A stretch of 64,000 bases of DNA from NCBI GenBank assembly GCA_964035545.1, contig OZ037771.1:7991408-8055407 (forward strand), read 5' to 3'. The DNA is from Bugula neritina (Eukaryota > Animalia > Bryozoa). Below the pieces are notes generated by a model. That model ran no database searches and had not been told where the DNA came from. It saw only the letters and a program-made list of their open reading frames with translations. Numbering within the stretch: position 1 is the stretch's first letter; every line of letters begins with the position of its first letter. The position numbers and the translations under genes were made by a program. This document shows positions 15,040-61,503 of the stretch, piece by piece.

Positions 15040-15183
15040 CTGTCTGGTAGAGTAACCAGTTCACAACACTCCATCTCTAACTCTTTCAGTGATACTAAGG
15101 ATGTGAATATATCATCAGGTAGACCTTCAGATAGGTTATTCCACGCTATCCTCAGCATCTCAAGACTTTTCAGTGAAGATATG
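15040..15183 (-). pseudogene. Orphan 144-nt LRR cassette exon (copy of 44037-44180) with intact splice sites
   Basis: 2 mismatches in 144 nt versus 44037-44180; ttacag acceptor, AG|gtatgt donor; flanking intron homology about 14965-15376 versus 43962-44370. No other LRR-gene exon seen nearby. Confidence 0.8.
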
Positions 15184-34000: not shown

Positions 34001-37000
34001 TGAAAAGGTTGACGTTGAAGAGTTACATCTACTTGTAGTTGAGGAACTGTGTTCATAGTCTTTAAGGTCCTGATAACTTTGAGTGGTTTGCTGTCATTCA
34101 TCTTCTTCTTTCGGCATACAATTTCAAGATGTCCAGTGAGTTTGCAGTAGTTGCATGTAGAACTTTTGTATCTGCATTCTGCTGGCTGGTGATTTGTCTT
34201 TCCACAGCGATAACAGGGTTTGTTGATATGTGTTGGCTGAGTCTTTGGTGTAGAGCTTGGAGTCGTCTTCTTCTTCTTGCTGACTTTATGGAGAGCGTTG
34301 ACCTCTCCGTGAACAGTTTCTTTAGCTACTTTAGCTGCTTCTTCAGTTTCCACAGCGATTTCAGTAGCTCTGTTGAAAGTGAGATCTTCGTCCTTGAGTT
34401 TAAAGATTGCCTTCAGTATAGCTTCATTTCCTACTGAGCATATAAATCTGGTACGAAGTGCTTTATCTTGTGGGTCAGTAATTGAAGAAAAGTCACAAGT
34501 TGTTGCGTCATGTCGAATCCTAGCTGCTAGTTCTGGAATAGTCTCCCCTGGCTTCCTTTTCATGTCGTGCCAAAATCTGTATTTTTCTCTGATGATGAAT
34601 GTCCTTGGGTTATATTGTGTCATCATGTAGTTGTTAACTTCATCCATCGTCAGTTTGTTGATCTCCTTCTTTGGTGTCTGCTGCTCCGCCCAATCACTCA
34701 ACTGCTTGTAGATGGCTGTTGTTTGGTTTGTCAAAAATACTTGTGGTATTTTATCCTCTGCGATTGAGTTGGCTCCAATGAAGGTGGTGAATCTTGCTGA
34801 ATATTGAGTCCATAGTTCTGTACTTGGATTAAATGCTGCAAAATTCGAGGTTGATGCTGGGGTTTTCTTCTCTGCTGACTGGGTGAGTAGTTGAATCAGC
34901 TCCCGATTTTCTGTTTGCTGCTGTTCTATCTATCTTTGCCTCTTGCTGTTCCATCCTTGCTTCTTGCTGTTCCATCTGTTGCTTCTGCAAATCCATCTGT
35001 TCCTTTTGCTGTGCCAACTGCTGGGTTAACAAAACTATCAGTTGATCTGTAGGTGTAGACATAATTTTTGAAGTATGTCTAAATGAAGAGTCTTTGAAGA
35101 TTTGAAGATTCTGATGATAACCGCGTAAAGTAAAAGTAGATGATCAGTTGAAAATCCTTGAAGCTGATCCCATCCTCGTCGCCAAAATCTGTTGTGTTTC
35201 AAACAGGTGTATTGATCATAAAATAATTTACAATGAAAACAGTAGAAGTGTTACCACCTTATATATTAACTTGCACAGAAAAGCTGATATAGCTGTCTAT
35301 AAATAAACAAAATAAGCGCTGAAGCTAACATGAAAAAGCCATTACATTTTTTAGATTTATGCAATGTCATGCTATAACAAACAGTATTCAAAGTAATGCA
35401 TGACGCACCAGTGTCAAGATGAAATTCAATGTCATAAATAGTATTTACCTGCTTAGCAGTGAGCATCGCTAATGGTTTACAATCCCATACTGTAGTGGAG
35501 ATAGTACTTACATTCTGAGAGTCACTGTCTGAAGAGTAGTTTTAAGCGACTTGATTGGCTGTTTCGGTTGAGTCGAGATAATGATGCATGCATGACCTGC
35601 AGTATGTGGCAAAGTGATTGAACTTCTTGCAATGATTGCGCTGCTTCCCATATGCTGGGCAAGCTCAAAGTGGAAGGTTGCCTCCACAGTTTCCACGCCT
35701 AGAAGCAACAACTGATTTTCTGACGTTGGGCTGAGAGCGAGTGTGTGAAAGCTGTCTTTTGTGTTTATCAGTATCACGAGTGTAGTCAGACTGGTATTGA
35801 TTAGTCGTAGTTCTATCTTTTACCAAGTTTGCTTGTTCGAGTCTATAAGTGTTACCATTATTCATAGTCTTGTAGTCAATGGCTGATGCTTCTTCCCGTC
35901 TACAGAGCTTAAATGCTTTATCAACGTCAGAGTCAGTCAAGTCAAACAGTTTTTTTTTAATTTTGACACTTTCAATCCCTAGTATAAGTGCTTGTAGTAT
36001 CAGTCGGTTGCTCATAACTTTCAAGTCACATAGTCCTGACATGGTATATAGTTCAGTCAAAAATTCGTCAAATACTTCTATTTCTTTGCTTACACATCAG
36101 TAGTGAATGAGTCCTAGCCACTAAGTTTATTCTTGGCTTGCAGTAGTCATCGAATTGCTTCGCTACTTTGTAGTCAGTTTTGTCATTGTTGTCAGTTCAG
36201 GTAAAAGATTCGTATATTTGGTATGCAATTTTCACTTTGCTATTGGCTGTATTTTTCGTGGTGGCAGTTAAAAAAAATTCAAAGTCACGTTTAAAAGTTT
36301 TGCACTCTTTAGGTAGATTCGGTCCATCTGCTAATGATTTTAGATGTCAATCACAGCCTGATTTCAACACCCTACTTATCAAAGTTTTTTTTAAACTTCT
36401 TTAGTTGTTTTCAAAGCTTTTCACTTTTCATAATGAAATGTTTTAGCACTTTTTAGAAACTCTAAGCCATACTGCCGACAGAATCTTGGCAAGCTGTTAA
36501 TAAAAGTCATGAGCTTGCTTCTCTCTTCTAATAATGCCATGAGGTCTTTTTCAATGGTATTTATTTGACAATAGGCTTCTTCTGTTTTCGTTTTGTACTG
36601 CTCCACTTGAGCATCTGTGATAACAGATGAGTGAACTCTTCAACAAAGAAAAGAGAGTTTTGATTTAGTCTTAGACAGTGAATCCTGCTGTTGCTTCTCT
36701 ACTTGAAAAACCAAACTATCGCTGTTGCTCTTCAGGCCATCAATCACATCATCCATGTTATTCTGTCTTTCAGTCAACTCTTTCTGAAGATTGACTAGAA
36801 TATTCCCAGTTTATCCTGAAAAGACTCAGTTTTGTTTTGAATATGCGCTGCTGAAGATAGAGTGGCTGATTGCAGCTTCACTATTTCCTTAATTAGTCCG
36901 TGAAGTTGAGCCAATCTTTGACCCTATTCGAATAAAACAAATACAGTCATGTTTCTAAAGATGTATGGTGCATGGCAAGGCTACTTTTGGTTATAAAGGC

Positions 37001-42819: not shown

Positions 42820-45800
42820 TCAGGTTGGAGGTTTTAAATTTGTGAAATACTTTTTGACATCATAAGCCCCTTTCTGACACACTCTAAGTGGTGGAGATAT
42901 GAGAGCATCACAACCGTGCCCTCCCAGAGAGTAAAGTTCAGTTAGTTGCAGTATCGCAGGATCTAAGGATGTCAATGACTCATTGGAGGATATATTCAGC
43001 GCCTGCAGACTACTCAGTGTGTACACAACAGGCGGTAAACTGGTGAAATTATTTGATGATATGTCCAGTCTTCTTAACTTCTGTAGATTCTGCAAACTAT
43101 AAAAAGTAATCCATCTTCAAGAAAATTAATGTAAATTTTATAAGCCCATGTTGGCATACAATATACACAGAATTAGAACTAGCAGTTCCCCCTTGAAAGT
43201 TATATTCACTTGCATATAATAACTTGTCCTTTACTTGTTGGAAGAAATAAATAAAGAAATAGTAGAGAAGTTACATGCAGCTTCTGTATCAGTCTATTTA
43301 TTAATGAGAAAAACTGGCGAATATCAACAAGTGTCTATTTTCTACACACTATGTGGATAGAACACGCATCCTCATTACAATATTCTATCACAATTTAGCA
43401 ATAGGTTTTGAAACTATTTAAAAGTAACCAAAATATCCCAACCAAGCAACTTAAGGATTCAAAAACTAGTAATGTCAACAAATGTAAATTAGAAAAAAAT
43501 AAGTGAATTACTTACATAATTACAACTTGAATTTTATTATGACTTTATAATTGATTATTGATTTGAACCTACAATTTTTAAGCTGGCTACTAGTTCCATT
43601 ATACTACTCCTGTTTCTATAGCAACAGTGACACAAAATTGTTTGGGTAGCTGTGATTGGTTAGCAAGACAACAGTAATAATGGTTGACCATCACAAAGTG
43701 AGCTGCGATTGACAAATTCGTTCATAACTTTTTACATCATATATTTCTGACGGTTCACACTACAAACTAGATTTACTAACACAAATAAACCAACTCCACC
43801 GACATAATTTAGTAAAATTTACCAGCAACATAATGTCCAATGCTAAATCAAATTATAGCTCACTCTATACTGTAATCTCAACTGGCCATAATAACCTCTC
43901 TGTATGCACAAACATGTTGCTCCAATGAAGACACCAGCCCTAATAAAAGCACGGCTACCATATTGTATATATTGCGTCTAGCTAAATTAAACGGCAACTA
44001 CATATAGGTCAGACAACTCCATAATACAATACACACCTGTCTGGTAGAGTAACCAGTTCACAACACTCCATCTCTAACTCTCTCAGTGATACTAAGGATG
44101 TGAATATATCATCAGGTAGACCTTCAGATAGGTTGTTCCACGCTATCCTCAGCATCTCAAGACTTTTCAGTGAAGATATGCTGTAACATAGCACACAGGT
44201 ATGAGATACGGTGACACTGATGACTGTGATGTCACAAGTTCCCTAACATGGCAGCAGGAAATTAAAGATATTAAAGGATTGTAAGCTCATAAAAAATATT
44301 GTAGATTTACATGAAGAAATGTTTGTAAACATATGAAAACGAGTCAATATGTAAGTTACATGCTGATTGGCTAGTGAAGCTACATGTTGATTGGCTTGTG
44401 AAGTTTCATGCTGATTGGCTAGTGAAACTACGTGCTGGTTGGCCAGTGAAGTTACATGCTGAAGATCCGTTACAGAACATTTCTCAGGTCTGATTAAATA
44501 CCCAAAACTTCACAAGCAAAACTATTAGATTACTTTATTACTTAAATGTTGGTAATGTTACCATCTGAATATGTGGAATAGTCCTATAAGCATCTCAAAT
44601 TTGGGGGGGGGGGTGAAGGACGCTTTTCGTTTAGGGGTCTCAAGTTTGGAGTTGCAAACCTAACTTTAAATTTGAGAACCCAAAACTAAAATCGTCCTTC
44701 ACCCCCAACTCAGAGCTGCTTATAGAACCATTTGAATATGAGACTCACGACCAGTTCATTTTCATGATAGATAGTTTCGATGGCCATACTGGTGAACTGT
44801 ATTGTATTTCCTTTTAGTAAGAAGGAGACGTCAAGTGTATAATTTATATAACATAAACTATTGCAGAGTTATACCATTGTATATTTATCACAATATCATG
44901 CTACTATACACACCTGTTTGGTACAGCCTTCAAGCTACACATTCCCATATCCAACTCTCTCAATGACTGTAAGGGTGTAAACAGATCGCCATGGAAACCT
45001 TCAGACAGATTATTCTCAGATATATCCAATACCTCAAGGTCCTTCAGTAGAGAGATGCTGTAACATATCACACAAGTATACAATGTAGCAAAAGTAAAGC
45101 TTAAGAAATGCCCAGTCCAACACCTTAAAAGGCATATTACCTGAAAATACTTCACTCAACAAAGAGAAGAGAACTTTATAATATCGAACACGCACCTGCT
45201 TGGTAGAGCTACAAGTTTACAGTCACACAACTTCAACTCTTTCAATAACAGTAAGGAGGTGAATATATCTTCAGGTAGACCATCAGATAGGTTATTGAAT
45301 GATACATTCAGCACTTTGAGATTCGTTAGTGAAGAAATGCTGTAAAATACATACATGGGTAACAAAGAACAGTACTGAGCGAGTGCAGTAGTCAGTGAAC
45401 TGCCATACTCGACACAGACTGCAGGTAGAAACAGGTGGCAGACCTAACTCTGAGTCATATGGAGATGCTTCCGTAAAAATCTGTCATCACAAAAACAAAC
45501 ACAATTCAGGAGATCCATTCCATTTCGAGCTTAACCTCCTTCAGTAAGATACCCACCTAAACAGTACATACAATACCATAGTGCCGTTTACCTGCTACAT
45601 GGTATAGCCAATTGAGTCAAGACAATTCTACGACAGGTTCTACACACCTGTTGGGTAGAGTTGGCAATTGACAGTAGTTCATATCCAACTCCCTCAATAA
45701 TATTAAAGGTGTGAATATGTCGTCAGGTAGACCTTCAGGTAGGTTATTGTCTGATATATTCAATACTTCAAGACTCTTCAGTAAAGATATGCTGTAACAT

Positions 45801-48800
45801 AACACAAGTGTGTAAAATCATGGATTAGGTGCAATAAATGATCCTAAACAGCCAATCTAGCATGTTTTTGAGTAGATACAGAGACTAGAAACAACACACT
45901 CATGTTGCTGTGCCAAAGAATGGGGATTGAGCTGCTCAAAAATACATAAATACACCAGTTTGAATGGTCAGAAGATAATGTATGAACTCGACAGTCATTT
46001 GATATCATATGGTGAAATATAGATAAAATATAGTACGCATACACAAGAGAACATAACACACACATGCACACACGCACACACATATATATATATATAAATG
46101 TTGAAATGCATATAGTGTGCAGTCTGTAAGGATAAGAGAATAAAACATTGATGTCATATGGTGGAATCATCGGATTATGATATATCTAGCCAAATATCCT
46201 TTACAGAAAGTATAATTAGTAGTATTGCATGTTATACACAATAGACACCTGTTTGGTAGAACCGATAGTTTACATGTCCTCACGCTCAAATCTCTCAATG
46301 AAAATAAGGATGTGAATATATCGTCAGCTAGACCTTCAGATAGGTTATTATTTGTTAAATTCAAAACTTCAAGATTCTTCAGTGCAGATATGCTGTAATA
46401 TACATACAGGTTGTAGCCATGAGAAATGAAACCATCAGTGAAATGGTGGAATCATTAAATTGGATTATTTCTACATGGAAAAACATTAACTCTAGCCAAC
46501 TATGGAAACACAGGTAGAGATAACTCTGAGACACGGATAACACACCTGTGTGGTACAGTTACCAGGTCACAGTCTTCCATGTCCAATTCTCTCAATGATA
46601 ATAAAGATGTGAAAATATCGTCAGGTATACCTCCAGAAAAGTCATTTTCTAAAATTTTCAATACTTCAAGATTCTTCAGTAAAGATATGCTGTAACACAA
46701 CACATAGCTATGAAATCCTGTATATCGTAATTGAACAGTAAGCAAAAGGTTCTATGAACTAATACAGTTCCGTGTAATGCAAAATATACATATACTATGC
46801 CACATACCCAGTTGGTAGAATTTTCAGTTTACATTCTTGCATGAATAACTCTCTCAAAGATACTAAGGATGTAAATATGTCGTCAGGTAGTCCTCCTGAG
46901 AAGTCATTTTCTGATATATCCAATACTTCAAGATTTCTTAGCAAAGATATGCTGTAATCATAGAGACACATAAATTTCGGTAATTACAGTGAAAAGAGCT
47001 TCACTAAAACTAGTTAGTGAGCTACGAAATATGACAATTGTATAGTTAGTAGTACCACTTATTACTCTGTATAATAATGTCCTGTACTCATCAGTAAATA
47101 CACTGCATTGGCACTGAGTAGCTACTAGCTACAGCACACCTGCTACTCAATGTCACACAGCACATCTGCTACTCAATGTTACACAGCACATTTGCTACTC
47201 AGTGTCACACAGCACACCTGCGACTCAGTGTCACACAGCACACTTGCTACTCAGTGTCACACAGCACACCTGTTACTCAGTGTCACACAGCACATTTGCT
47301 ATTCAATGTCACACAGCACACTCGCTACTCAGTGTCACACAACACACTTGCTACTCAGTGTCACACAGTACACTAGCTACTCAGTGTCACACAGCACACT
47401 TGCTACTCAGTGTCACACAGCACACCTGCTACACATGGTCACTGCAGTGCATTTACTAATAAGAGCTACAAGAAAAACCCATGTATTCAGTAGTAGAGAG
47501 TATGTATGATACTGAGGCTCGGACAATAAGAAATACTGAACAATTACGCGGACACTTCCACTTAAAAGTTGTGTCAGTTATATTCAAGGAGTGCAACAGG
47601 TAATGTCATTATATATATGTATTGGTATGCCACCCAGATGTATTGGCAGGCAGCCAATCATTAAAGCTTTCAAGCTTCAAAGCTTTCACCAAAGCTACTA
47701 TTAGCTGGGAGAGCTAGTGCATTCACTGTACTGCATGAGTCAGTGTATCATGATCAAACCGCCATATTTACACTCTTCGTAAGAATAAACTATCGGTTTC
47801 GGTATTGTGATGGCTAAGAATTTTACCTACGCATCAATATTGTAAGTTTATTAGAATTATAATAGTTCATGTCAATTTGTTTAGTTCTGTAATGTTCATG
47901 GTGTTCCTCTGAATTTTGATTTATATTGTGACTACTTACTTATACAATTTCTAATGTTTCCCATTTTTCTAGGGTACGATTTGAGAGTTAATAAACTTGA
48001 AAACCTGTTGCCAAGTTGGCTAGTAGTTAAAGCATATCTTGCAACCAGACACAAACACAAACCGATACAATATATAATACACACCTGCTAGGTAAAGTTG
48101 ACAATTTGCATTCCCTCATGTCTAACTTCCTTAATGGTAGCAGAGATGTGAAGAAGTTTTCAGGTAGAATTTCAGGTAAATCGTTATAAGACAAACTCAA
48201 TTCCTCAAGACTCTTTGTGGGGGATATACTGTAGAATAACATAACACGCATGTTTAGCAGTAGTTGTAGTGCTTTATCACTACATAGAATATATAAGTAT
48301 AATTATGACCCAATTATAGATTCACATATGTATTTACAAATATTTATATTATGTAGTTTTGTACTCTCACGCAAGTTTATAGTCACCATTCCTGTCGGAA
48401 CCTCTGGTGGAAGGGGTTTGTAAAATTGGGCTAAGGACTTGTTCACAAGTGGCATAAAAGCAATTAAGACTGGATGCTCTTCCTAACATCACCAATGGCT
48501 TTTACTGGGGTCCAAACCAACGAATTTGTGTTTACCAAGCCAACACTCTAACCTCTAGACCTAGACTGCTCCCTATACTATATAACTTTATACATATACT
48601 CCAAAGTTACTTTTAATGAAAACGTTGTATTATACCTGTTGAAGTTAGTATCAGAATCTGCAAAGTTTACTCTCAGATGTGTGATATTAGGAAACATTGT
48701 GTTGATATCTAAAGAGTTATCTCCTCTCAGTATAACATGTGTGACAGTTTGATGTTTGCTTTTTTCCTTGATCTCTTCTATAGTGTAGGCTGTAGTGTTG

Positions 48801-49464
48801 TTCTCCATCCACTTGTCACCGTCTTCAACTATACAGGATGTGTTGAACCACACCCAGTATTTCTCTACAGGTAACACAAAATTTACTCTCTATTAACACT
48901 AGGCTGCTGATTGAACAAAATGCTGCCACTATGCAGACCAGTCAGCAGTACTTTATATGCTAAGCAGTGTCAGTAACATTGACAAGTATACTACCCTCAA
49001 GTTTCATTTTTAATAAAAAACTCTGTAATGTTAGAGAGTGGAAGGACACCAGCATATCATCAGGATATGCAAGTAGAACCATGTGGTCAGTCTTAGAGAC
49101 AACATATACTAACTAAAAATGTCCATTAATAATTCTACTACTTTCATTCACTAGTAAATAAACACCTCAATAAAATTTGTGGAGTCTGTTTCAGATTTAA
49201 TTTCATTAATTCTGTAGTTACCTGAAATGTCTGCTTCTATATAACTTACTAACCAGTCACAGACTGAGTTGAAGGCAGAGCTACAGACTGAGTTGGAGGC
49301 GGAGCAACAGACTGAGTTGAAGGCGGAGCCATGAACTGGGTTGGAGGCGGAGTCACAGATTTAGTTGGAGGCGGAGCTACAGACTGAGTTGGAGGTGGAG
49401 TCACATTCTGAGTTAGAGGCGGAGTCACAGGCTGAGGCGAAAGTTGAGAAGCTGAATCACTCAT
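42820..49464 (-). CDS. LRR protein B (622 aa): Pro/Thr-rich N-terminus, N-cap domain, 8 two-LRR cassette exons, ROCO/MFHAS1-like C-cap
   Basis: Exons 49254-49464, 48636-48864, cassettes 48085-48228, 46808-46951, 46546-46689, 46249-46392, 45648-45791, 45196-45339, 44914-45057, 44037-44180, last 42820-43096. All GT-AG; total 1869 nt in frame with no internal stop. Confidence 0.9.
44355..44462. repeat. ~24-bp tandem repeat (GTTACATGCTGATTGGCTAGTGAA)
   Basis: 4-5 degenerate copies. Confidence 0.8.
44583..44727. repeat. Imperfect foldback/inverted repeat (probable MITE remnant)
   Basis: CTATAAGCA..GGGGGTGAAGGACG pairs with CGTCCTTCACCCCC..TGCTTATAG. Confidence 0.7.
47125..47432. repeat. 26-bp minisatellite (TGCTACTCAGTGTCACACAGCACACY)n
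   Basis: About 11 copies; the same array sits in the corresponding intron of gene A (57968-58212). Confidence 0.93.
48371..48572 (-). mobile_element. tRNA-like SINE copy
   Basis: Reverse-complement homology to 51775-51980; head-only fragments also at ~14305-14356 and ~14905-14953. Confidence 0.7.
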
Positions 49465-50133
49465 ACTGTGGTCACCGGTCACAGCTGTAGATGTCTTTAG
49501 TCTTATCTGTAACAACAAATTAGTAAGGAACTCACCACACAGATGACACATAAATGTGGTCCTACTAAAAAGAAATAATTAATTTCAGTTTAAATACATT
49601 TGAAAGTTAGTAGGCAGCTTTAGGATGTGTACTAGCATCATATAACAATTCATGTCACTTGTACTACTGCAACCATCCTTGTGAAGTTATAACAGATAAT
49701 AGTCATTCATCAGCTTGAAAGACACAAGTCACACATGATTTGTGTGTTTCCATAAAATAACTGCTGCTCTCAAATATAACCACACATTCTGCTTTTCCAG
49801 CTTATAAATTTTTCACTCCCCTATTGGCTATTCAACTAGAATGATTTCACATTTGACAGAAAAAATTGAATAAGATATCAAGTAAACTTAAGACTGGTTT
49901 ACTAGTTACCATTACTAAGATTTTATAATCATAGTTGTGAGGAGAAACTTTATCATAAAATTGTCACCTCAAATCAAGTATTAAGTTTAATATTACTAAA
50001 TCACTTCATAGGTTTACTCATGAAGCAAACACAAACATAGTAATAATTGGTTACAAAGCATAGCACTTAGTAAAGGTATGCTCTAATAAAACTGGCTACC
50101 ATACATATACACAGAAACTCTTCAACGCTCTTA

Positions 50134-50512
50134 AGGCCTGGCCTCACGATCGTGAGAATCACACGAAATCGTATGACGATTTTCGTGAGTTATCCTCTTG
50201 TTTTGACCAGCCACACACTAGTCGGACGAAACACATAATAAATACTCCGTGAATGAGTCTTGCACGAGGTACAAACAGCAGAAAATTGTCAAATAGAGAA
50301 ACGTGATAGAAATGAAATAATTACTGTTGCTAAAATTCTATTGACCAATCAAATGGTACTTATCGTCGATTGTGATTTTTCGTCCATCGTCATTGTTGTG
50401 TACACCCAACGATGACGATTTCGTTTGAATTCCCTCAAATTTTCTTGTAGGAATAATTTTTTGTGTCAAATAGACGATTTCGTGTGATTCTCACGATCGT
50501 GTAGCCAGGCCT
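50134..50512. mobile_element. MITE, PIF/Harbinger-like (second family)
   Basis: About 39-bp TIRs AGGCCTGGC..CACGATCGTGAGAATCACACGAAATCGT; TTA TSD on both sides. Confidence 0.85.
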
Positions 50513-51077
50513 TTAAGGTCTCTCCACATCTGGGAACTTTGAAACTGTTGAAACTAGCCACTGAAAAATACAAACTGCCAAGACAGACATATTTTTTAAC
50601 AAAGTGTTAAAGGGACCAGGTGTGACTGAATGTGCAGTAAGTGTTGTGTTCAAAGACTAACAATCTACTGAAAACCATTGTGACCAAAAACGGTTGTGGC
50701 CATCACAAAACCTCCAATTTTGGAGGCCCATAAGAGATGAGAGTTCTGCATATTCTATATTGGTGTCAGAAATGAGTAAAATATGTATATATTTGGTAGA
50801 ATATTCTTATTTAGATAAAATAAAAATTGTGGTTATTTTTTAAAATAATTTGCATTAAAATTACATATTTCTAATTATTGTCATACTGAATATTCAAGTG
50901 AGAGCAGTGATAATTATAAGTAATAATAGTAAAATATGTATTAGCAGTAGTGACTGTAACTATCTAGATATTGATAAATCCAGGACTAGAAAACTATAGT
51001 CTTCTAATAATAGTAGGATTCTGAAATTAATATCATAATGACATAAATCATCATTAGCTGTCTACAGGACCAGATCA

Positions 51078-51300
51078 CTGTTGACAGAACTAGGTGAATG
51101 TTGACAGAACTAGGTGAATGATGACAGAACTAGGTGAATGTTGACAGAACTAGGTGAATGATGACAGAACTAGGTGAATGATGACAGAACTAGGTGAATG
51201 ATGACAGAACTAGGTCACTGCTGACAGAACTAGGTAAATGATGACAAAACTAGGTCACTACTGATGGAACTAGGTCACTGCTGATAGAACTAGGTCACTG
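51078..51300. repeat. 20-bp minisatellite (GACAGAACTAGGTGAATGAT)n
   Basis: About 11 copies. Confidence 0.92.
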
Positions 51301-51774
51301 TGGTTCCACTCTCACAGAAGTCAGTTAAAAGTTTAAACTTTTCAAGTCAGCGCAGTGATCAAACCGTGTGCTGCAGCAGCTAAGAATAACATGTAGTGAA
51401 TATTTACAAAGAGTTTATAAAAAACAGCAATGATTAGTATTAGTTTTATAACACTATGAACTTCAGAGCCAAACACCATCAGTATGAGCACATAATTTCT
51501 TATAAAACAAAATTGTTTGAGCATAAGATCCTGAAACAGTCTGCAGATTATAGATGAGGTATATATGGATGCTTTATTACTGCATAACTAAGTTGTGTCG
51601 AGATTCTTTAATATATAATATTTATAAAAATAAAATGTTGCAGCTATAAGATTGAATCATTGAAATATTTTAAATTTACCAGTTCATGAGTCTAGCTAAA
51701 AGACTTAGTTTAAATTTATAGAACTTTCAAAACACATTTGCAGAAAATTAACTAGCCAATTGTGTGTAATACCA

Positions 51775-51980
51775 GAGAGCAGCCGTGGTCTAGGGGTTAG
51801 AGTGTTTGCCTAGTAAGCATGAAGTCATGGGTCCAAGCCCTGACAAAAGCTATTGGTGATGTTAGGAAGAGCATCCAGTCATAATTGCTCCTGTGGCCCA
51901 TCTGAATAAGTTCTTAGCAGCTTTAACAAAAAACCCTTCCTTCAGGGGTTTCTCACAGGGATGCTGACTATAAACTTGCA
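51775..51980 (+). mobile_element. tRNA-like SINE overlapping the stop codon of LRR gene A
   Basis: A-box-like GTGGTCTAGGGGTTAG and degenerate B-box GGGTCCAAGCC; body and tail align with 48371-48572 through GACTATAAACTTGC. Confidence 0.72.
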
Positions 51981-54900
51981 GGAGTTAGTGTGTAATACCG
52001 GTTCACGGCATTGACTCCTCTCATACATGTTGCTAGTGGAGGAGATGTGAGAGCATTACAACTATATACAAACAGTGACTGGAGTTGAGTTAGATTTTGT
52101 ATCGCAGGATCTAAGGATGTCAATGACTCATTGGAGGATATATCCAGCGCTTTCAGACTACTCAGTGTGTACACAGCAGGCGGTAGTTTTGTTATGTTGT
52201 TGCTTGGTATCATGAGTCGTTGCAACTTCTGTAGACTTTGTATACTATAAATACGAAATAAATTCACATGACAAATATATATGCAAAGTCTCGGCATGCA
52301 AATTACCTGCTAAAGTGCAGCAGTAAACTCATAGATATATAGTATATAACTGTCAGTAATGGGGCATGAAGAGACGATTCTGGATTGTGCAAGAAGTAGA
52401 GATTTGACGCTGGTTACTACTTTCTACGCCAAAAGTGATGAGAAGACCTATACATACAAGATTGACCTAAACCAAGGAGTGATTGATTGCATCATAATAC
52501 CATGAGAACATTTTGGTAATGTGAAAGGTTTTAAACTGATCCTAGGTGAACCAATAGCACCACAATGTATGCTCTTAGTGATGGGTTGAAAGGTCAAAAA
52601 AGAGAAATTAGTAAGAAAGAGTACACTGGTAAACGTCAAAGAGAAAGGAAGTGAGCTGGTTTGCAAGGTTGCAGACATGTTAGCACATCAAAGCAAAGTG
52701 AGTGATTTGACATACAATAAGACATACCCAAAAATAATTAAAGCAGCAAATGAGTCACTTGGAGTAAGCAAAGGTGAATAAGGAATGAATCATGGTGATG
52801 GAATGAGGAAGTCCAAGAGGGAGTGAAGAAAAAGCAAGCCGCCTTCAAAGACAGGAAAAGAATCAAATCAGTCGAAGACAAAAGATACTGAAGACTGAAT
52901 AAGATCAGCAAAGAAAAGTGTGCAACAGCAAATGGCAGTTGTGAAGACTTGTGTAAAGATCTAGAAGAAAATGGCCCAAAATATATAAGTTATAAAGGAC
53001 AAGCCAAAGCAAATAGAAGAACATATATATGATAGCATTCATTGAAGATGAGCAGAGTAAAATCAGGAGTGAACATAAGGTCATCAAAGAAAGATGGAAA
53101 GAGTACTTCAACAGACGACTAAAAACCAAAAACATAAAACAAGAAAAAACAGCAATGGAGAAAGTACAGGAGCCAGTTGAGGATATCACAGGAGAGAAAG
53201 TTCAAAAATCAGATAGAAATGATGAAATCGAATAAAGCAAAAGGTCTTGATGAGCTCCCTATAGTGATGATTAATAAATGTTATCTCAGATGACAATGGG
53301 GGAGATACACTGTGGAATATGCTGTGTACAGATGACCAGGTATTTTTCTGATGAGAGTAGAGGCAATATGGAAGAAAGATTAAAAGACTCGAAAGGAAGA
53401 TGATCAAATGTCAGCAGATCTGAAGCTGAAAACCTACTCAAAAAGAAAGCAACACAACATCAAGTGAAAGGTATATATGATAGCTCTAAACATGCCATTT
53501 TGCTCTAAAAAAACTGCATTCAAATGCCTGGGGATTCAATCACCGGAATGGAGGATGCAAGGCAGAGGTGAGAGAGTGAGAGGGAGAGAGGGAGAGAGGG
53601 AGAGAGAGAGAGGGAGGGAGAGAGAGGGAGGGAGAGAGAGGGAGAGAGGGAGAGAGAGAGAGAGGGAGGGAGAGAGAGGGAGGGAGAGAGAGGGAGAGAG
53701 GGAGAGAGAGGGAGAGAGAGGGAGAGAGAGGGAGAGAGAGGGAGAGAGAGGGAGAGAGAGGGAGAGAGGGAGAGAGGGAGAGAGGGAGAGAGAGGGAGAG
53801 AGGGAGAGAGGGAGAGAGGGAGAGAGGGAGAGAGGGAGAGAGGGAGAGAGGGAGAGAGGGAGAGAGGGAGAGAGGGAGAGAGGGAGAGAGGGAGAGAGGG
53901 AGGGAGGGAGGGAGGGAGAGAGGGAGAGAGGGAGAGAGGGAGGGAGGGAGAGAGGGAGGGAGGGAGAGTGATGATGACATCAGAAGAGTACATGAGATGA
54001 TAGTAAAAAGGAACAAAAAACTGATGGCAATGAGTACAACCGTCACAACCGTAGACGATCAGCAAGACGACAGCAGACAGTCAAACACTAAGACTTGTTG
54101 GTAAACGGTAAGCTAGCCTAGTCGTAGGTGTTGGCTTTAACTTGCTATATTATGTATCTAGAACATCGTTTAGTTACAACAACTTGCTGTACTTTACTTT
54201 GTATTTAAAGTTTTCTTCTAAACATTTTAAACTTGTAGTGTATTCAATGCTTTTTCCTGACTATTTATTATTATTGTTGCGATAGCATACATGGCTATTC
54301 TCTAGAAAGTTGTATATAAGCAAGGCAAAGCTTAGTTAATGTTCAGTAGTATGGAGTAATAATTTGTAGTAGCTTTCAGAGCAGTTAGAAGTTGTTCATT
54401 CAGTTAGTGTGTTCAGGAAAAAACTACAAAGTAACACAATGAGTCAAGGATTTTCAACTTACGGAATCAACCCCGCAGTACACCAGAAACTGCCCAACAT
54501 CAAAATCATCAGCTGACTACAGGTTCTACTCTACATGTCCAACATGATGGTTGGAATAATTGCTCTGAAGACCAGAAGAAAACTTATACTACTCAAAACC
54601 TCTAAGAGTAGCTGTTATTGGCTAACCAAAGTTATGTAATAATAATCTTTTGACATTGCAGCCCCCTGAGTTTGCCCACTATACCCATGACCTAAACTAA
54701 TATATGTTCTATTACATATATTGTTATATATTAAATACTAAACACAACTCATTAAGGTAAAAAGCAAACCTGTCTGGTAGAGTTATCAGTTCACAATACT
54801 CCATTTCTAAATCTGTCAATGATACTAAGGATGTGAATATATCGTCAGGTAGACCTTCAGATAGGTTGTTCCATGATATAATCAATTTCTCAAGATTCTT

Positions 54901-57900
54901 CAGTGAAGATATGCTGTAACGCAACACACATGTATAAGCTACAGTGTAATAGAACACACAGACACATAAGTTAACTATTATCATCATTACTATGGTTTTA
55001 GTGTTAGAGATGATATTAGTGCTGGCAGTGGTATTGGCAGTAGCAGTGGTGGTAGTTGCAGTGGCAGTAGCAATAACAGTAGTGGCAGTGATGGTAGTTG
55101 TAGTAGTAGTAATAGTAGCAGTGGCAGTAGTAGTTGTAGTAGTACTAATAGTAGCAGTGGCAGCAGTAGTTGCAGAACAATTAAAACAGTAATAACTAAT
55201 ATTCAAGTAGTTATACACAGCAGTTGCACAATACAGTGTTTCTAGGATGTAACAATATATACCATAAACAATATAGCTGTACATATTAATTCCAGCATCG
55301 TTCTACATCGTATTACAACACTCACCTGCTCGGTAAAGTTACTAAGTTGCACATCTCCATGTTCAACTCTCTCAATGATTGCAAGGATGTGAATATATTG
55401 TCAGGTAGACCTTCAGGTAGCTTATTCCATGATATATCCAATACCTCAAGATGTTTTAGTAGAGATATGCTGTGACAAGGGAAACAGTATACACTTAAGT
55501 TTTAATATGGAAGCATTTCACAAGAACAGGTGAGCGATTTTACATAATGTAAGTCTATGACAGTTGTATATCAAGTAGTACCACTTATTACTGTATAACA
55601 GTGTTACACAGTTAGAGTTGTCTGCTACTTCCACTGACGTGGGCATGTGATTCATTATATTCTTAACCAAAGTACATATGTCAGATAAACTCAGTAGACA
55701 TTGACCTACGTTTGCCATCACATGGTATGAGAATTACGCAGTGAGTGCCCATTCAGCAAATACCCAGTCACTGTTATACCCACAACAAACAGAGTCTAGT
55801 TGACAAGTATTGTACATTAGAGAGTTGTCTTCCCTATGTAATTGAAATTACATAGTGGAGATAACTCTCTAATGTAAATACTCACCTGTTTGGTAGGGCT
55901 ATGAGTTCACAGCTACACATGTTCAACTCCTTTAATGATGGAAAGGATGTGAATATATCATCAGGTAGACCTTCAGATAGCTTATTGTCCTGTAAAGTCA
56001 ACACCTCAAGATTCTTCAGTGAAGATATGCTGTAACATAACATAATTGAGTAAAAAGAGTATATAATGGAATGAGATAAAGAACAACAGTGGTGAGTGAG
56101 CTGTTATAATTGACATAGACTGCAGGTAAAAGCAAACAGAAGAGAAGGAAGAAGTAAGAGTTGTATAACTTGACATAAGCTTGCAGGTAGAACTTCAATA
56201 AACATGGCAGGTGCTTGTATAATAAATATGCAACTGAAATTAATAAATGTTATAGTTGTCAATTCTTATACAAGAAAAAACTATTAAATGCTGTAAATGA
56301 CATCATGTTGTAAATCGGCGTTAGCGAATAAAGACTAGCTGATAAATCAAGGGGTGTACAAAAAAATAAATGGCTTACTAAAGAGGAGCTGAATGAGATG
56401 GAGAAAAGAAGTGATGATGAAAATACTAATGAAGAGGGAGATAACCACAAAAATGGTAAGACACTGCCTAGAAATTGCAACCAAGAATAAAACAGAAGGA
56501 AATATACTAGAGAGAATGCCAAGAGAATTGACTTCAAAGAAAAACAACTGAGAGAAAGAGAAAGCTTTACAGAGTTTTTGAGTCAAAATTGGAAACTTTG
56601 TCAAAAACTGTCAGAATCTTCACAAGAGCTACACCTAAATAATTTGGAGTGCGAAAGTGATCCACGTGGGTCATGAGAAGAGAGAAGGAAAATAGGACAG
56701 AAGAATCATTACAACAAGGAAGCTTATCACTATGAATCGTGCACTCTACCCAAGAGCAGATGTGGACAGACTGTATGTTAGAAGGAGAGAAGGCAGCAGA
56801 GGAATGATGTCAGCTGAATAATGCGTAAGGATTGAAGAATGCAGCTTGTCAGATGGGACACACAATGTGGAGTAACTTCTAAAGGACAAAATCCCTGAAG
56901 CACGGAACATAAATGAAGTGATTGAAAAAACTAAGAGATGAAAAGAAAGGCACTACATGATTAGTACATTAGAGGAGTGAAGAAATGGACTGGTTAGTTG
57001 AAGATGTCACCAAATAAGTAGTATAATTATACCTTTTTGGTAGAGTTACCAGCTCACAGGACCGCATGTGTAGCTTTCTCAGTGATACTAAGGCTGTGAA
57101 TATGTTGTCAGGTATACCTTCAGATAGGTCGTTTTCTGTTACATCCAATACCTCAAGATTCTTCAGTAAAGATATGCTGTAACACACATACAGGTTGCAG
57201 CCATGAGAAATGAAAACAGCAGCAAAATGGTGGAATCATTAAATTGGAATATTCCTCCTTGGTTATACATTGAGTCTAGCCAACTCCGGAGGTACAGGTA
57301 AAGGTAACTCCAAGATACCTAGTACACACCTGTTTGGTAGAGTCAACAGTTTACATTTCTCCATGTCCAATTCTTTCAATGATAGTAAGGATATGAATAT
57401 ATCGTCAGGTAAACCTTCAGCTAGGTTATTATCAAACATTTTCAATACCTCAAGATTCTTCAGTGATGATATGCTGTAACATAATATATGAGTGTGAGAT
57501 CATGTGTATTATAATGGAACAATGAGCAAACAGGTTCTCTGAAATAATACAATATATGATTTAAACAAGATACTACATTCTATAATATAATTAATAAATA
57601 TTACATTACGCACACGCACGCACAGATATAATACATACCTGCCAGGTAAAGTTGCAAGCTTGCATTCATTCATGTCCAGCACTCTCAATGATAGTAAGGA
57701 TGAGAACATAACGTCAGGTAGATCTTTAGATACGTAATTTCCTGATATATCCAATACTTCAAGATTTCTTAGTAAAGATATGCTGTAAAAGGCAAGGATG
57801 TATAAATGTTGGTTATCACATGGAAACTTCACTATAGCTAGTTTGTGAGTTACAGTAGGTCTATGACAGTTGTATAGTTAGTAATAGTACTTATTATTCT

Positions 57901-59402
57901 GTGTAATAATGTTACAGTCAAAGTCGTGTACTCATCGGTAAATACACTGCATTGACACTGAGTAGCTACTAGCTACAGCACACCTGCTACTCAGTGTCAC
58001 ACAGCACACCTGCTACTCAATGTCACACAGCATACTTGCTACTCAGTGTCACACAGCACACCTGCTACTCAATGTCACACAGCATACTTGCTACTCAGCG
58101 TCACACAGCACACCTGCTACTCAATGTCACACAGTACACTAGCTACTCAGTGTCAGACAGCATACTTGCTACTCAGTGTCACACAACACACCTGCTACTG
58201 AGTGTCACACAGCTATCATTAGTAAATGCACTGTACTGAAATCTCCACCCAGCCAGTTGAATAAGTTATAAATAAGAATTCAAACAAATGTTATTATATA
58301 TAATACATGCCTGCTAGGTAAAGCTGACAATTTACATTCCTTCAATTCCAGCTTCCTTAATGATAGCAGAGATGTGAATGCATCGTCAGGTAGAAATGTA
58401 GATAAATCATCATAAGAAAAACATAATACCTCTAGACTCTTTATTGAAGCTATACTGTAGAATAAAATATATATCTGTAATTGTTACATGAGTATATTGC
58501 TGTACAATCAATATATAAAATTTAAAATGCTTATGTGCTTTTTCGTTTTAGTGTAGGCCTACTTTCCTCTGCATATTTTGTTATGTGCGTATGCATGTGC
58601 GTGTGAGTTCTATCTTTGATTAATGAAGTCTTGCCTTACATATATGAAAAACGTGTTTCTACATTGAATAAGCATAAGGCAGTTGAATAGAATAAGTCAG
58701 TAAACATAGACACCAAACAGACATGCAGATATTTTATGTGAGTCAAGTGAAAAGAAAATAATAGGGCAGCTACAAAGATATAGGGCTGGATTCGAGAAAG
58801 TGATGGATAAGTTAATTATGTTGCATTTTGTGATTCCAAATTATAATCTTACACTATACCTGCTAAAGTCAGTGTCACTGTTCACATCATAAATGGATAG
58901 GTGTGTGAGATGAGGAAACAGTGTAGCAATATTTGGAGAAATGTTCTCTCCCAGTATCATATGAGTAACTGTATGACGTGGACTTATATCTCGGATCTCT
59001 TCTATAGTGTAGCAGGAAGTAAAACTCCCTATCCACTCGCCATCTTCTTCTTCTATACTGGATGTGTTGAACCACACTCGGTGCCTATCTGCAAGTTATA
59101 CGATATGTGATAGTTTATACATCACACCGTCAATGAGTAGATATTTACAGATTTCATCACATCAGTATCCTAACCTTATACAGCACGATGCTCTGCCAAA
59201 ACTGCGCCTCACACAATATTCAGTATAACTACTGCTATTTGATAGGTCTGCTACAGATCTAAGTTGATACAGTCCTTAACCACCGGTCAAAAGGTTTGAG
59301 TTATATAATTTACTAACTTGGTACTAGCTGAGTTGGAAGTTTAGTTTGAGGTAGAGTTGAATGTGAGGGTTGAGTTGGAGGCTGGGATACAGACTCATCC
59401 AT
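51968..59402 (-). CDS. LRR protein A (532 aa): paralog of B with 7 two-LRR cassette exons
   Basis: Exons 59318-59402, 58860-59088, cassettes 58311-58454 (GC donor), 57639-57782, 57330-57473, 57033-57176, 55886-56029, 55326-55469, 54770-54913, last 51968-52244. Total 1599 nt in frame; the 229-nt and 277-nt exons match gene B in size. Confidence 0.88.
52355..53500 (+). mobile_element. Decayed non-LTR retrotransposon fragment (RTE-like endonuclease/linker)
   Basis: Broken peptides [42 protein letters not shown]. Confidence 0.6.
53570..53968. repeat. GA-rich (GGGAGAGA)n simple repeat
   Basis: Homopurine tract of about 400 bp. Confidence 0.96.
54990..55172. repeat. Degenerate (GTA/GCA/GTG)n trinucleotide repeat
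   Basis: Intronic; yields the poly-T/A and poly-V ORFs. Confidence 0.85.
56200..56960 (+). mobile_element. Decayed, internally deleted non-LTR retrotransposon (R4/Dong-like)
   Basis: [21 protein letters not shown] at ~56745-56810 is the typical post-RT motif; upstream [10 protein letters not shown] segment. Confidence 0.55.
57968..58212. repeat. 26-bp minisatellite, paralogous to 47125-47432
   Basis: Same unit and same flanking intron sequence. Confidence 0.92.
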
Positions 59403-61503
59403 TCTGCAATCACTGAATAAAGTTGCCAGTCTCACTTAGTAACGTTCATTCTCATCTGTTACATCAGCATCATTAATTTCAGTCAATGCACTTCAAACTA
59501 GTTCTACAGCTTACATGATGATGTAAACTTTTATTAAAAATAAAAAAACTGTGACAGACAATTCTAGAACACACTAGTTATTCTTCTGCTAAAAAATCAA
59601 CTAAAAATTCTCACTATCCTTTAAATAGCGGCAGCTTTCAAATAAGATGCATAACATTGATTCAAAATTATGTTTAACTAAACAATATTGCACTCTGCTA
59701 CAAGAAACCTGCTTTAAAACTAAATCAAAATCTGCATAGCAAAATGATAGACTTTAGCACAAAATTCTTCTTGTTGACTTTAAGCCTCAAATTACATACC
59801 CAGCCTCACAGTCACTGACTTACTAGCACAAATACAAAACGTAATCTTAGTCTAAATGACAAAAGAAATTTTCAAATTTCAACATGAAAAGCTTCAAATT
59901 GACATACCTGCCATCACAATAATCACCTACATAGAGAAAGTACCAGTACCAGAGAAGTAGAAGTAGAAGTAGAACTAGAAGTAGAGCCTTAGAATTAGAC
60001 TGTTTTAGAGATCAACATAATTATTACTAGTAGCACTAACAGTAGTACTGCTGTTGTTACAAATAATAGTACTTTAACATTAACCCTGAGTGCGAGTAAT
60101 GACTATCACAGCATAAGTAACACTATTAGAATTACTACATATAAAAGTACAAGCATCAGCATGATTTTATATAAATGATATTATATTAAGTTGAGTAACT
60201 ATTCTTATTATCATTTTGATTTTCATTATGAGAAGTTAGTTTTATGTATGAAATAACCATCATGAATGAGGAATTTGAAGAAATATTTAATTTCATTTTT
60301 ATAATAAAGTAAAATATTAAAGCGGAACTACAACTTAAGCATAAGAATTAAACTTAATTAATATAATTACAAATAACATAAATATATTACTAAAATAATT
60401 AGAATGTAGTTTAAGTTTTAGTTCTATCTAATTCTATTAATTTCAAAAATTTTATGCATACAGTAATTTTTCTGTCATTACTAATAACTAATACTAATAG
60501 TAATAAGCAACAATAGTAATACTAAGAGACATAGCTATCCTGATCCTGACAATAATAATACAATAGTAGCCTACTCATCACTTATGGTAAATGTAATGCT
60601 AATAATACTAGCATTGCTAGAACCTAGAATTTTGTAGACACATCATTGACAAACTATTTAGACTGTACCCCTAACAGTAACACCAAACTGAAACTTGAAA
60701 CCTTCAAAGCACTGGAATCAGTAACTCCAAACTTTGTGCTGCATCAGGTTATTTTCAATCTTTTTATGATGATAATTACAAAGATAAATTTAACAACATT
60801 CACATTGAATAATTGATAAAATTGAATCAATGATATTAATAATAATATTAATATTTATTCATAATTGAATTTGATAATGATATTGATTGTATCGAGTTGG
60901 TTAAAGATTCTTTACTATAAAACATAATATAGTTACGTTTAACAGATGATGCCAGTCACTTAAGTAAAATGAAGCATTTTAGTAATGCCAATCGAATTAT
61001 ATAAAAGTATATTTCAATGGATGGTGCAATCTATTGAAATTATACTATATAATAACTATATTATTTCAGTAACACCATCACAGTCACTGAAGTACAGAGA
61101 AATGCATATTATTTGACCTTTAACCCTTAGACTAAAATACGAATAAAGCAAAATGTGTACTTCGAGCGGAATAATTTTAGTCCGATAATTTAAAACGTTC
61201 TATAAACAAAGGCAATTTATTTTCGCCGTTCACAATTATTTGAGTTACATTTTTTCTATTACAAGAGCGGTATATATCAGGAGTGGCGACTTTAGCATGA
61301 GAAGTCAGCATGCCGCTATTATTACCGCGAGGTTATTTAATATATAAAGAAACATTTTGCCACTTGCGTTATTTTATTATTTTCTTATATCATGTGTACA
61401 TTTTTAGCTTTGTTTACTAGTTAAATTTTTAAACATATTTCTCATGCATATAAAATTAAAAGAAATTTAAAACTCACACACACGCACATATTATATATAC
61501 ACG

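Follow-up and report, generated by a model that had tools for sequence, protein, structure and literature searches.

The window analysed here is a stretch of 64,000 nucleotides (nt) from the bryozoan Bugula neritina (contig OZ037771.1, positions 7,991,408 to 8,055,407), eukaryotic in character, with microsatellites, short open reading frames (ORFs) and about 35% GC. Its minus strand holds 15 exons ("cassettes"), each exactly 144 nt long and encoding leucine-rich repeats (LRRs), which fall into two tandem genes of eight and seven cassettes (gene 1 and gene 2, respectively). An earlier note on this DNA had proposed that the cassettes are hypervariable on the predicted concave face of the repeats, as a result of diversifying selection for ligand binding. 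Our analysis makes it probable that both are LRR genes derived from the ROCO family, that their concave face is under diversifying selection, and that they are likely to recognize varied ligands.

Two tandem genes built from 144-nt cassettes

Upstream of each cassette are a pyrimidine tract and AG, and downstream is GT, with a GC donor at 58311-58454 and a weak GT donor (GTTTGC) at 54770-54913. The cassettes are of phase 2/2, i.e., the first base of the exon is the third of a codon and its last two bases open the following codon, and the junctions read AG/C or AG/T and encode Ser, the sole exception being 46808-46951, which ends in GG and gives Gly. The 47 internal codons align without gaps and encode two unlike LRRs, one N-type and one C-type, with periods of 25 and 23 residues. 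Columns L7, L10, L32, L35, C40 and L42 are invariant and N15 is nearly so, and the cassettes carry the LRR core motif (LxxLxLxxN/CxL at a period of 20-30 residues). In Pfam, LRR_1 is matched at 20.6 bits, exactly its cut-off of 20.6, and LRR_8 (19.3 bits) and LRR_4 (15.6 bits) stay below the cut-off of 27. The scaffold motifs given in the earlier note are present as stated, and the 15 four-residue strings before the Asn and the 15 before the Cys, shown in parentheses below, are exactly those quoted there.

Gene 1 comprises an N-terminal exon that ends at 48636, eight cassettes spanning 48228 to 44037, and a terminal exon that runs from 43096 to 42820. Gene 2 is laid out in the same way: its N-terminal exon ends at 58860, its seven cassettes span 58454 to 54770, and its terminal exon runs from 52244 to 51968. 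All 15 cassettes and all four N-terminal and terminal exons are open, with usable splice sites. The features are as follows.

48636..48877, minus strand: gene 1 N-terminal unique exon; donor AG/GT after 48636, phase 2; 5' limit approximate
48085..48228, minus strand: gene 1 cassette 1 (SLSY / DMRE)
46808..46951, minus strand: gene 1 cassette 2 (DISE / FMQE); ends GG, junction codon Gly
46546..46689, minus strand: gene 1 cassette 3 (KILE / DMED)
46249..46392, minus strand: gene 1 cassette 4 (NLTN / SVRT)
45648..45791, minus strand: gene 1 cassette 5 (NISD / DMNY)
45196..45339, minus strand: gene 1 cassette 6 (NVSF / KLCD)
44914..45057, minus strand: gene 1 cassette 7 (DISE / DMGM)
44037..44180, minus strand: gene 1 cassette 8 (RIAW / EMEC)
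42820..43096, minus strand: gene 1 terminal exon; three LRRs and a cap, then a stop; no Roc-COR after it
58860..59077, minus strand: gene 2 N-terminal unique exon, an ORF; donor AG/GT after 58860, phase 2; 5' limit approximate
58311..58454, minus strand: gene 2 cassette 1 (CFSY / ELKE); GC donor; divergent "first cassette" type, groups with 48085 (bootstrap 100%)
57639..57782, minus strand: gene 2 cassette 2 (DISG / DMNE)
57330..57473, minus strand: gene 2 cassette 3 (KMFD / DMEK)
57033..57176, minus strand: gene 2 cassette 4 (DVTE / HMRS)
55886..56029, minus strand: gene 2 cassette 5 (TLQD / NMCS); pairs with 45196 (bootstrap 87)
55326..55469, minus strand: gene 2 cassette 6 (DISW / NMEM); pairs with 44914 (bootstrap 79)
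54770..54913, minus strand: gene 2 cassette 7 (IISW / EMEY); weak donor GTTTGC; pairs with 44037 (bootstrap 97)
51968..52244, minus strand: gene 2 terminal exon; three LRRs and a C-terminal cap, then a stop; LRR_4 and LRR_8 matches; no Roc-COR after it
15040..15183, minus strand: orphan 16th cassette, a copy of 44037-44180; 2 of 141 coding nt differ; AG/GT intact; flanks 110/120 nt identical

The cassette order is collinear between the two genes, with first cassettes pairing at bootstrap 100, last cassettes at 97 and 55886/45196 at 87; therefore, the array predates the gene duplication. The N-terminal exons of gene 2 and gene 1 are 44% identical, and that of gene 2 has no Pfam match. Since all junctions, from the N-terminal exon to the terminal exon, are of phase 2 with AG/Y, any subset of cassettes would be in frame.

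The window genes belong to a large LRR-Roc-COR family

A cassette profile search of the 216-Mb genome returned at least 844 candidates, which cluster chiefly at C1:32.5-35.1 Mb, with others on C3, C5 and C7; none of the 150 candidates that were scored has an internal stop. Homologues of the N-terminal exon occur at 57 places, co-located with cassette arrays, and Roc-COR exons adjoin such arrays at no fewer than 111 places. A typical family member combines an N-terminal exon with 2 to at least 9 cassettes; its single terminal exon, about 700 codons long, encodes three further LRRs and a cap, and then the Roc GTPase and a COR-like region. The Roc domain of these paralogues is matched by PF08477 above its cut-off of 27 (28.9 bits in the typical member L034 and 30.1 bits in P0151). 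The COR-A match is weak, found only in P0187 at 20.5 bits, under the cut-off of 35.3; precomputed PF16095 is present on more distant matches, and the COR-like region of the paralogues aligns to the homologous protein P0016 at 35-42% identity over about 350 residues.

The best named relatives are proteins of another bryozoan, Watersipora subatra, annotated as "malignant fibrous histiocytoma-amplified sequence 1 homolog" or "-like", at 38% identity. Two-LRR units in tandem before Roc also occur in the Watersipora subatra proteins P0188 and P0187 ("MFHAS1-like") and in P0016, and the homologous protein models hold 5-8 such units in series. Contigs of JGI metagenomes encode proteins that are 75-82% identical. 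In P0187, the last part of the protein model (residues 844-895) is the beginning of a caspase domain (Peptidase_C14, 35.4 bits, cut-off 21.4), a feature that hints at a link between the ROCO family and cell-death signalling.

The window genes can be aligned with a full-length paralogue up to residue 103 of the latter's terminal exon; the likeness stops at the LRR cap, a stop codon comes next, and no Roc follows the LRRs as it does in ROCO proteins. Genes 1 and 2 end at the same point and thus descend from one truncated ancestor, the truncation having occurred before the duplication and been retained. At a synonymous divergence (dS) of 0.5-0.9 between the two genes, the ratio of non-synonymous to synonymous divergence (omega, dN/dS) is 0.38 in the N-terminal exon, 0.48 in the terminal exon and 0.31 in the cassette scaffold, so that both copies have stayed constrained since the duplication; these values argue for retained function rather than decay. 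From these comparisons, the window genes read as descendants of a very large, MFHAS1-like LRR-Roc-COR (ROCO) family that have kept the LRR part only.

Variability is concentrated at the exposed positions of the repeats

In the register used here, repeat A spans columns 7-17 and repeat B columns 32-42 of the cassette, and the x positions are 2, 3, 5, 7, 8 and 10 of LxxLxLxxN/CxL, giving 12 columns over both repeats. The entropy per column, averaged over the 15 cassettes in genes 1 and 2, amounts to 0.40 bits at core L/N/C, 1.89 at x positions and 1.03 in the remaining columns (Mann-Whitney p = 0.0013). Variability is highest at columns 39, 11, 14, 38, 43, 47, 36, 30, 41 and 13, three of which (43, 47 and 30) lie outside the x positions. 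Thus, of the proposal that variability is confined to the concave face, the concentration holds and the confinement does not, since the 12 x columns account for 43% of the entropy in the window; in the rest of the family their share is 60%. Within the quoted four-residue blocks, moreover, position 6 is conserved core (I/M) and position 7 of repeat A is mostly Ser. Positions 2 and 3 of repeat A (E, V) are conserved, and position 10, beyond the quoted blocks, varies.

For the family we sampled 121 intact cassettes out of at least 844, taken from the window and 50 further loci. Entropy in this sample peaks at columns 39 (3.4 bits), 14 (3.3), 38 (3.1), 36 (2.6) and 41 (2.1), followed by 43 (1.9), 11 (1.8), 16 (1.7) and 34 (1.5), and Y, W, N, D, S, G, H, R, E and K make up most of the residues in the peak columns. 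Compared with the window, the scaffold varies far less, most columns staying below 1 bit. Minority states recur at columns 5 (E), 13 (L), 18 (Y/F/P), 20 (D) and 22 (L), and these may mark cassette subtypes.

Site models identify eight positively selected codons

The 121 cassettes were aligned by codon without gaps, a tree was obtained with IQ-TREE (GTR+G), and site models (GY94-F3x4, our own implementation) were fitted with branch lengths scaled from that tree. M0 gave an omega of 1.12. The log-likelihood rose from -4967.4 under M1a to -4771.7 under M2a (likelihood-ratio test [LRT] statistic 391), with an omega2 of 5.6 on 17% of sites, and from -4973.1 under M7 to -4772.4 under M8; the LRT of at least 401 in the latter comparison is a lower bound, as the M8 run ended early. 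Across M2a and M8, omega at the selected sites is 5.4-5.6, and both models select columns 11, 14, 16, 34, 36, 38, 39 and 41 (posterior approximately 1.0) and no other. These columns are LRR positions 5, 8 and 10 of repeat A and 3, 5, 7, 8 and 10 of repeat B; all eight fall among the 12 x positions, for which the chance probability is 1.6e-6.

A per-site test that gives each site its own synonymous rate was positive at columns 11, 14, 16, 34, 36, 39, 41 and 47, confirming seven of the eight sites. The core L, C and P columns gave a negative result, and column 38 is high in both kinds of rate. For the window's 16 cassettes (the orphan included), the comparison of M1a with M2a gave an LRT of 25.4 (p = 3e-6) and an omega2 of 3.6, with posteriors above 0.95 at columns 14, 36, 38 and 39 and of 0.54-0.89 at 11, 43 and 47. 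A dN/dS at or below 1 and an even spread of variability over the convex and concave faces had been named beforehand as contrary outcomes. Instead, omega is 5.4-5.6 in the family and 3.6 in the window, and the selected sites are all x positions.

Amino-acid change at concave positions outpaces intron divergence

As a control that needs no tree, we used 29 independent cassette pairs chosen by intron similarity (60 nt on each side, at most 10% mismatches). Pairs chosen as nearest by exon were dropped as the main test, their distance being dominated by the selected codons and their introns unrelated. The divergences in the 29 intron-matched pairs are as follows.

Intron flanks: 4.3%
Synonymous sites of the exon (pS): 4.0%
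Non-synonymous sites, a-priori concave positions 2, 3, 5, 7 and 8: 18.9%
Non-synonymous sites, all other codons: 4.3%

At the concave positions, dN/dS is therefore 3.3 and dN relative to intron divergence 4.9 (Fisher 5e-5 against synonymous sites and 1e-35 against introns), and at the other codons the latter ratio is 1.0. In one example, a pair from within one gene, about 450 nt of intron are 97-99% identical, and the exon carries 16 substitutions, 14 of which change an amino acid. Changes at the selected codons are distributed over codon positions 1, 2 and 3 as 84:45:28, and transitions make up 45% of them, compared with 65-72% in introns and other codons. This codon-position bias and the enrichment of transversions point to selection on the protein rather than to a mutator. 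Altogether, the intron-matched excess of dN, together with the LRTs of 391 for the family and 25.4 for the window, supports the proposed diversifying selection.

Two further observations concern the same comparisons. In recent duplicates, codons other than the eight selected ones change about as fast as the introns (omega 0.94); across the whole family they are conserved. At L012/L013/L040 (G000:C1:33.967-33.984 Mb), at least four cassettes of one gene have introns that are 97-99% identical and exons that differ by 8-11%, which suggests that the cassettes were amplified recently within the gene and that their exons changed very rapidly thereafter.

The selected sites map to the presumed binding face

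By standard LRR geometry, the side chains at positions 4 and 6 are buried in the core, those at 3, 5 and 7 face the concave surface, and those at 8 and 10 line the ascending flank. An AlphaFold2 (AF2) model of residues 1-470 of P0016, which covers the two-LRR units before Roc-COR, has a predicted local distance difference test (pLDDT) of 82 and a predicted template-modelling score (pTM) of 0.81. In each of its repeats, motif positions 3-7 form a strand and position 10 a bridge, and a short helix covers the P-D-x-I-F/G segment, the same segment that is conserved in the window cassettes. The model superposes on Leptospira LRR proteins, SHOC2 and the LRR domain of the Chlorobium Roco protein. The model of Watersipora P0188 is weak (pLDDT 58.5) and served as a cross-check only; it agrees with that of P0016. 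On this modelled geometry, the eight selected sites would lie on what is presumably the binding face, with the convex side conserved.

Exon and intron histories are discordant

Exon and flanks point to the same nearest neighbour in only 19 of the 121 cassettes. There are 18 pairs in which unrelated flanks surround exons with no more than 3.5% divergence, and 24 pairs in which the flanks differ by at most 6% and the exons by at least 8%. Where exons are alike and flanks unrelated, identity ends about 12-15 nt outside the splice sites. The exons thus appear as islands of homology, for which gene conversion or shuffling that starts and ends only inside exons would be the most economical reading.

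Proposed mechanism and alternatives

Building on the observed anatomy, family, selection signal and repeat position of the selected sites, we propose the following mechanism. The cassettes would be spliced in series into a horseshoe of about 17-19 repeats, in which the near-constant residues would form the hydrophobic core and the convex helix. The variable residues, at strand positions 3, 5 and 7 plus 8 and 10 just after, would make up the concave and ascending-flank surface. Diversifying selection acts on the selected codons, where amino-acid replacements accumulate at about five times the rate seen at synonymous sites or in introns. The rest of the exon is kept alike by purifying selection and, apparently, by exon-limited homogenization that includes synonymous sites. 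Ligand binding by the concave residues is suggested by general knowledge of LRRs and by the homologue model, and the family may have an immune role, as a repertoire of intracellular receptors that recognizes varied ligands (pathogens, symbionts or non-self tissue). The window genes, having no Roc-COR, might act as decoys or adaptors.

Several points weigh against this proposal. Searches of the window by tblastn with the Roc-COR regions of P0016, P0020 and L034 found no Roc-COR; the idea that one is hidden in another frame was rejected, as no frame of the window holds a remnant. Between positional counterparts of gene 1 and gene 2, omega at the selected codons is 0.94, three times the scaffold value and not above 1, and the scaffold varies more in the window than in the family (M1a assigns 55% of sites there to omega = 1). 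The family sample is a small part of the candidates. The structural mapping was carried out through DSSP strings, on homologues with a unit of 47 residues rather than 48. Because exon and intron histories disagree, recombination among cassettes is likely and can inflate the tree-based tests; the intron-matched test is exempt from this caveat because pS follows the introns and not the standing exon diversity (pS 0.12). Finally, serial inclusion of all cassettes, as well as expression, is a prediction from the sequence. The 5-8 tandem units in the homologous models favour serial inclusion. Among public runs, two labelled as RNA ("symbiont metagenome") hold 6% of the sampled words, and one is a DNA run.

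Several alternatives to diversifying selection on the concave face were weighed. If constraint were merely relaxed, the x positions would be free to drift without positive selection; they vary by definition in any LRR protein, and the omega of 0.94 at the eight codons between the window genes fits this reading. Drift cannot pass the neutral rate, however, and with dS equal to intron divergence the concave dN reaches 4.9 times the latter and 3.3 times dS, in line with the family omega of 5.4-5.6 at the selected sites, which makes relaxed constraint very improbable as the whole explanation. A recombination artefact, in which conversion or shuffling of exons creates homoplasy and a divergence of exons above that of introns, both of which site models misread as omega above 1, would account for the agreement of exon and flank neighbours in only 19 of 121 cassettes, for the 18 plus 24 discordant pairs, and for homology that ends within about 15 nt of the splice sites. 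Conversion moves both kinds of change, yet pS (4.0%) tracks the introns (4.3%) rather than the standing 12%, and the differences lie at the first and second codon positions; variants may well come from conversion, but their retention on the concave face only would be left unexplained, and we give this account a small chance. Even less credible, indeed scarcely tenable, is a targeted mutator (like a diversity-generating retroelement or a deaminase) acting on the selected codons, which the 16 of 141 coding nt that differ next to a 330-nt intron with about 3% difference might bring to mind. The 84:45:28 changes bear no signature of any one base and include an excess of transversions, core codons only a few bases away have been left unchanged, and the cassettes are germline paralogues rather than somatic variants; on the codon-position bias and the transversions, the mutator was rejected.

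Two other alternatives concern what the genes make rather than how the codons changed. The window copies could be decaying pseudogenes that lost Roc-COR and vary because they decay. The lack of Roc-COR anywhere in the window, the looser scaffold, the one GC donor and the one weak donor fit this idea, which we nevertheless hold to be unlikely: every cassette, N-terminal exon and terminal exon is open with usable splice sites, omega has been 0.38, 0.48 and 0.31 since a duplication at dS 0.5-0.9, and the shared end point places the truncation before that duplication, after which it was kept. Somewhat less remote, while still improbable, are alternative or mutually exclusive exons, by which one gene would yield many receptor isoforms; in a Dscam-like cluster, each transcript would include exactly one exon of the set. 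With phase 2 and AG/Y at every junction any subset is in frame, and tandem LRR exons are alternatively spliced in brown-alga ROCO genes (PMC11378527). Against this, the homologous models carry 5-8 units in series, a single two-LRR unit plus the three terminal repeats would form a very short solenoid, and cassette order is collinear between both genes.

Comparison with known LRR systems

The closest known system is the LRR-ROCO family of brown algae (Ectocarpus, Saccharina), whose LRRs are encoded by 72-bp phase-2 exons, one LRR each, that undergo exon shuffling (Zambounis et al. 2012, PMC3341825; PMC11378527). Four concave sites were found to be positively selected there with M1/M2 and M7/M8 (PMC3341825, PMC11378527), and the LRR exons are alternatively spliced (Front Plant Sci 2024, PMC11378527). 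The Bugula genes resemble them in LRR-Roc-COR architecture, in tandem phase-2 exons of equal length, in positive selection at concave sites and in exon histories that are decoupled from those of the introns. They differ in having two unlike LRRs per 144 nt rather than one per 72 bp, in belonging to an animal rather than a stramenopile, in a far larger Roc-COR count (at least 111), and in the loss of Roc-COR from the window copies; moreover, alternative splicing, which was demonstrated in the algae, is here a possibility.

Among animal proteins, the vertebrate ROCO protein MFHAS1/MASL1 is alike in having N-terminal LRRs followed by Roc, and the nearest relatives of our family are those that NCBI names "MFHAS1 homolog" or "-like". 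MFHAS1 is single-copy in vertebrates, and we know of no report of a hypervariable LRR face in it, whereas here more than 100 paralogues are under diversifying selection and COR is weakly detectable by Pfam. SHOC2 binds partners on its concave face. The P0016 model matches SHOC2 (PDB 7tvf) and the Chlorobium tepidum Roco LRR domain (5il7) with template-modelling scores of 0.65-0.71, a likeness of fold only, and both of these are conserved rather than hypervariable.

In the LRRs of plant NLR/R genes and in lamprey variable lymphocyte receptors (VLRs), diversifying selection acts on the exposed xxLxLxx residues of the beta-sheet, in large and fast-duplicating repertoires. The Bugula cassettes share this focus of selection on solvent-exposed beta-sheet residues. 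Plant NLRs differ in their NB-ARC signalling domain, in place of which there is a Roc GTPase or none here, and lamprey VLR cassettes lack splice sites and are somatically assembled, whereas those of Bugula are spliceable germline exons. The arrangement in the window is indeed not VLR-like, as all 15 gene cassettes lie inside the genes, in order, with AG and GT (or GC) sites.

These comparisons raise a broader possibility, which we put forward tentatively and would not yet favour: an animal counterpart of the brown-alga system, in which more than 100 germline LRR-Roc-COR genes and LRR-only offshoots serve as an intracellular recognition repertoire diversified by selection and exon-limited conversion. 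Combinatorial splicing of the in-frame cassettes might add to this diversity, and the repertoire could recognize pathogens, symbionts and other colonies, replacing NLRs or acting beside them. Large and fast-evolving LRR receptor families are known from plants (NLRs), jawless fish (VLRs) and brown algae (ROCO), and animal ROCO proteins as few conserved genes (LRRK1/2, DAPK1, MFHAS1); in the open-access literature we found no description of a comparable ROCO family in bryozoans or other animals. If correct, a ROCO family of more than 100 genes with a hypervariable face would constitute a further animal route to a recognition repertoire, and a convergent repeat of the exon-per-repeat design of brown algae. 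Bryozoan biology would gain candidate genes for symbiont control, pathogen sensing, and colony fusion or rejection.

Other features of the window

The orphan cassette at 15040-15183 reads as a recent duplicate of the last cassette of gene 1. A motif scan found no family exons beside it, 29 kb from the genes. Between it and gene 1 lie long retrotransposon ORFs at 22223-26692 and 31408-34734 (minus strand); one of them is a gag-pol of 1489 amino acids with integrase and reverse-transcriptase motifs, and a second gag/pol set is present.

The intron between cassettes 1 and 2 contains a 26-nt tandem repeat in both genes (12 copies at 47131-47432 and 9 copies at 57975-58213), which was found neither elsewhere in the window nor in the 51 fetched family loci. 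Its presence in the matching intron of both genes implies that it has been retained since the gene duplication, and it could be a regulatory element or a mere satellite.

Upstream of the N-terminal exons are ORFs at 49249-49551 and 59313-59435 (both minus strand), without Pfam matches. The former begins with ATG and enters a 24-nt tandem repeat coding for PPPTQSV-like units, and the two are possibly exon 1 of each gene, encoding a Pro/Thr-rich head. Between the terminal exon of gene 2 and its last cassette, a (GAGAGGGA)n array of 50 copies at 53570-53968 produces a strong peak of GC- and AT-skew.

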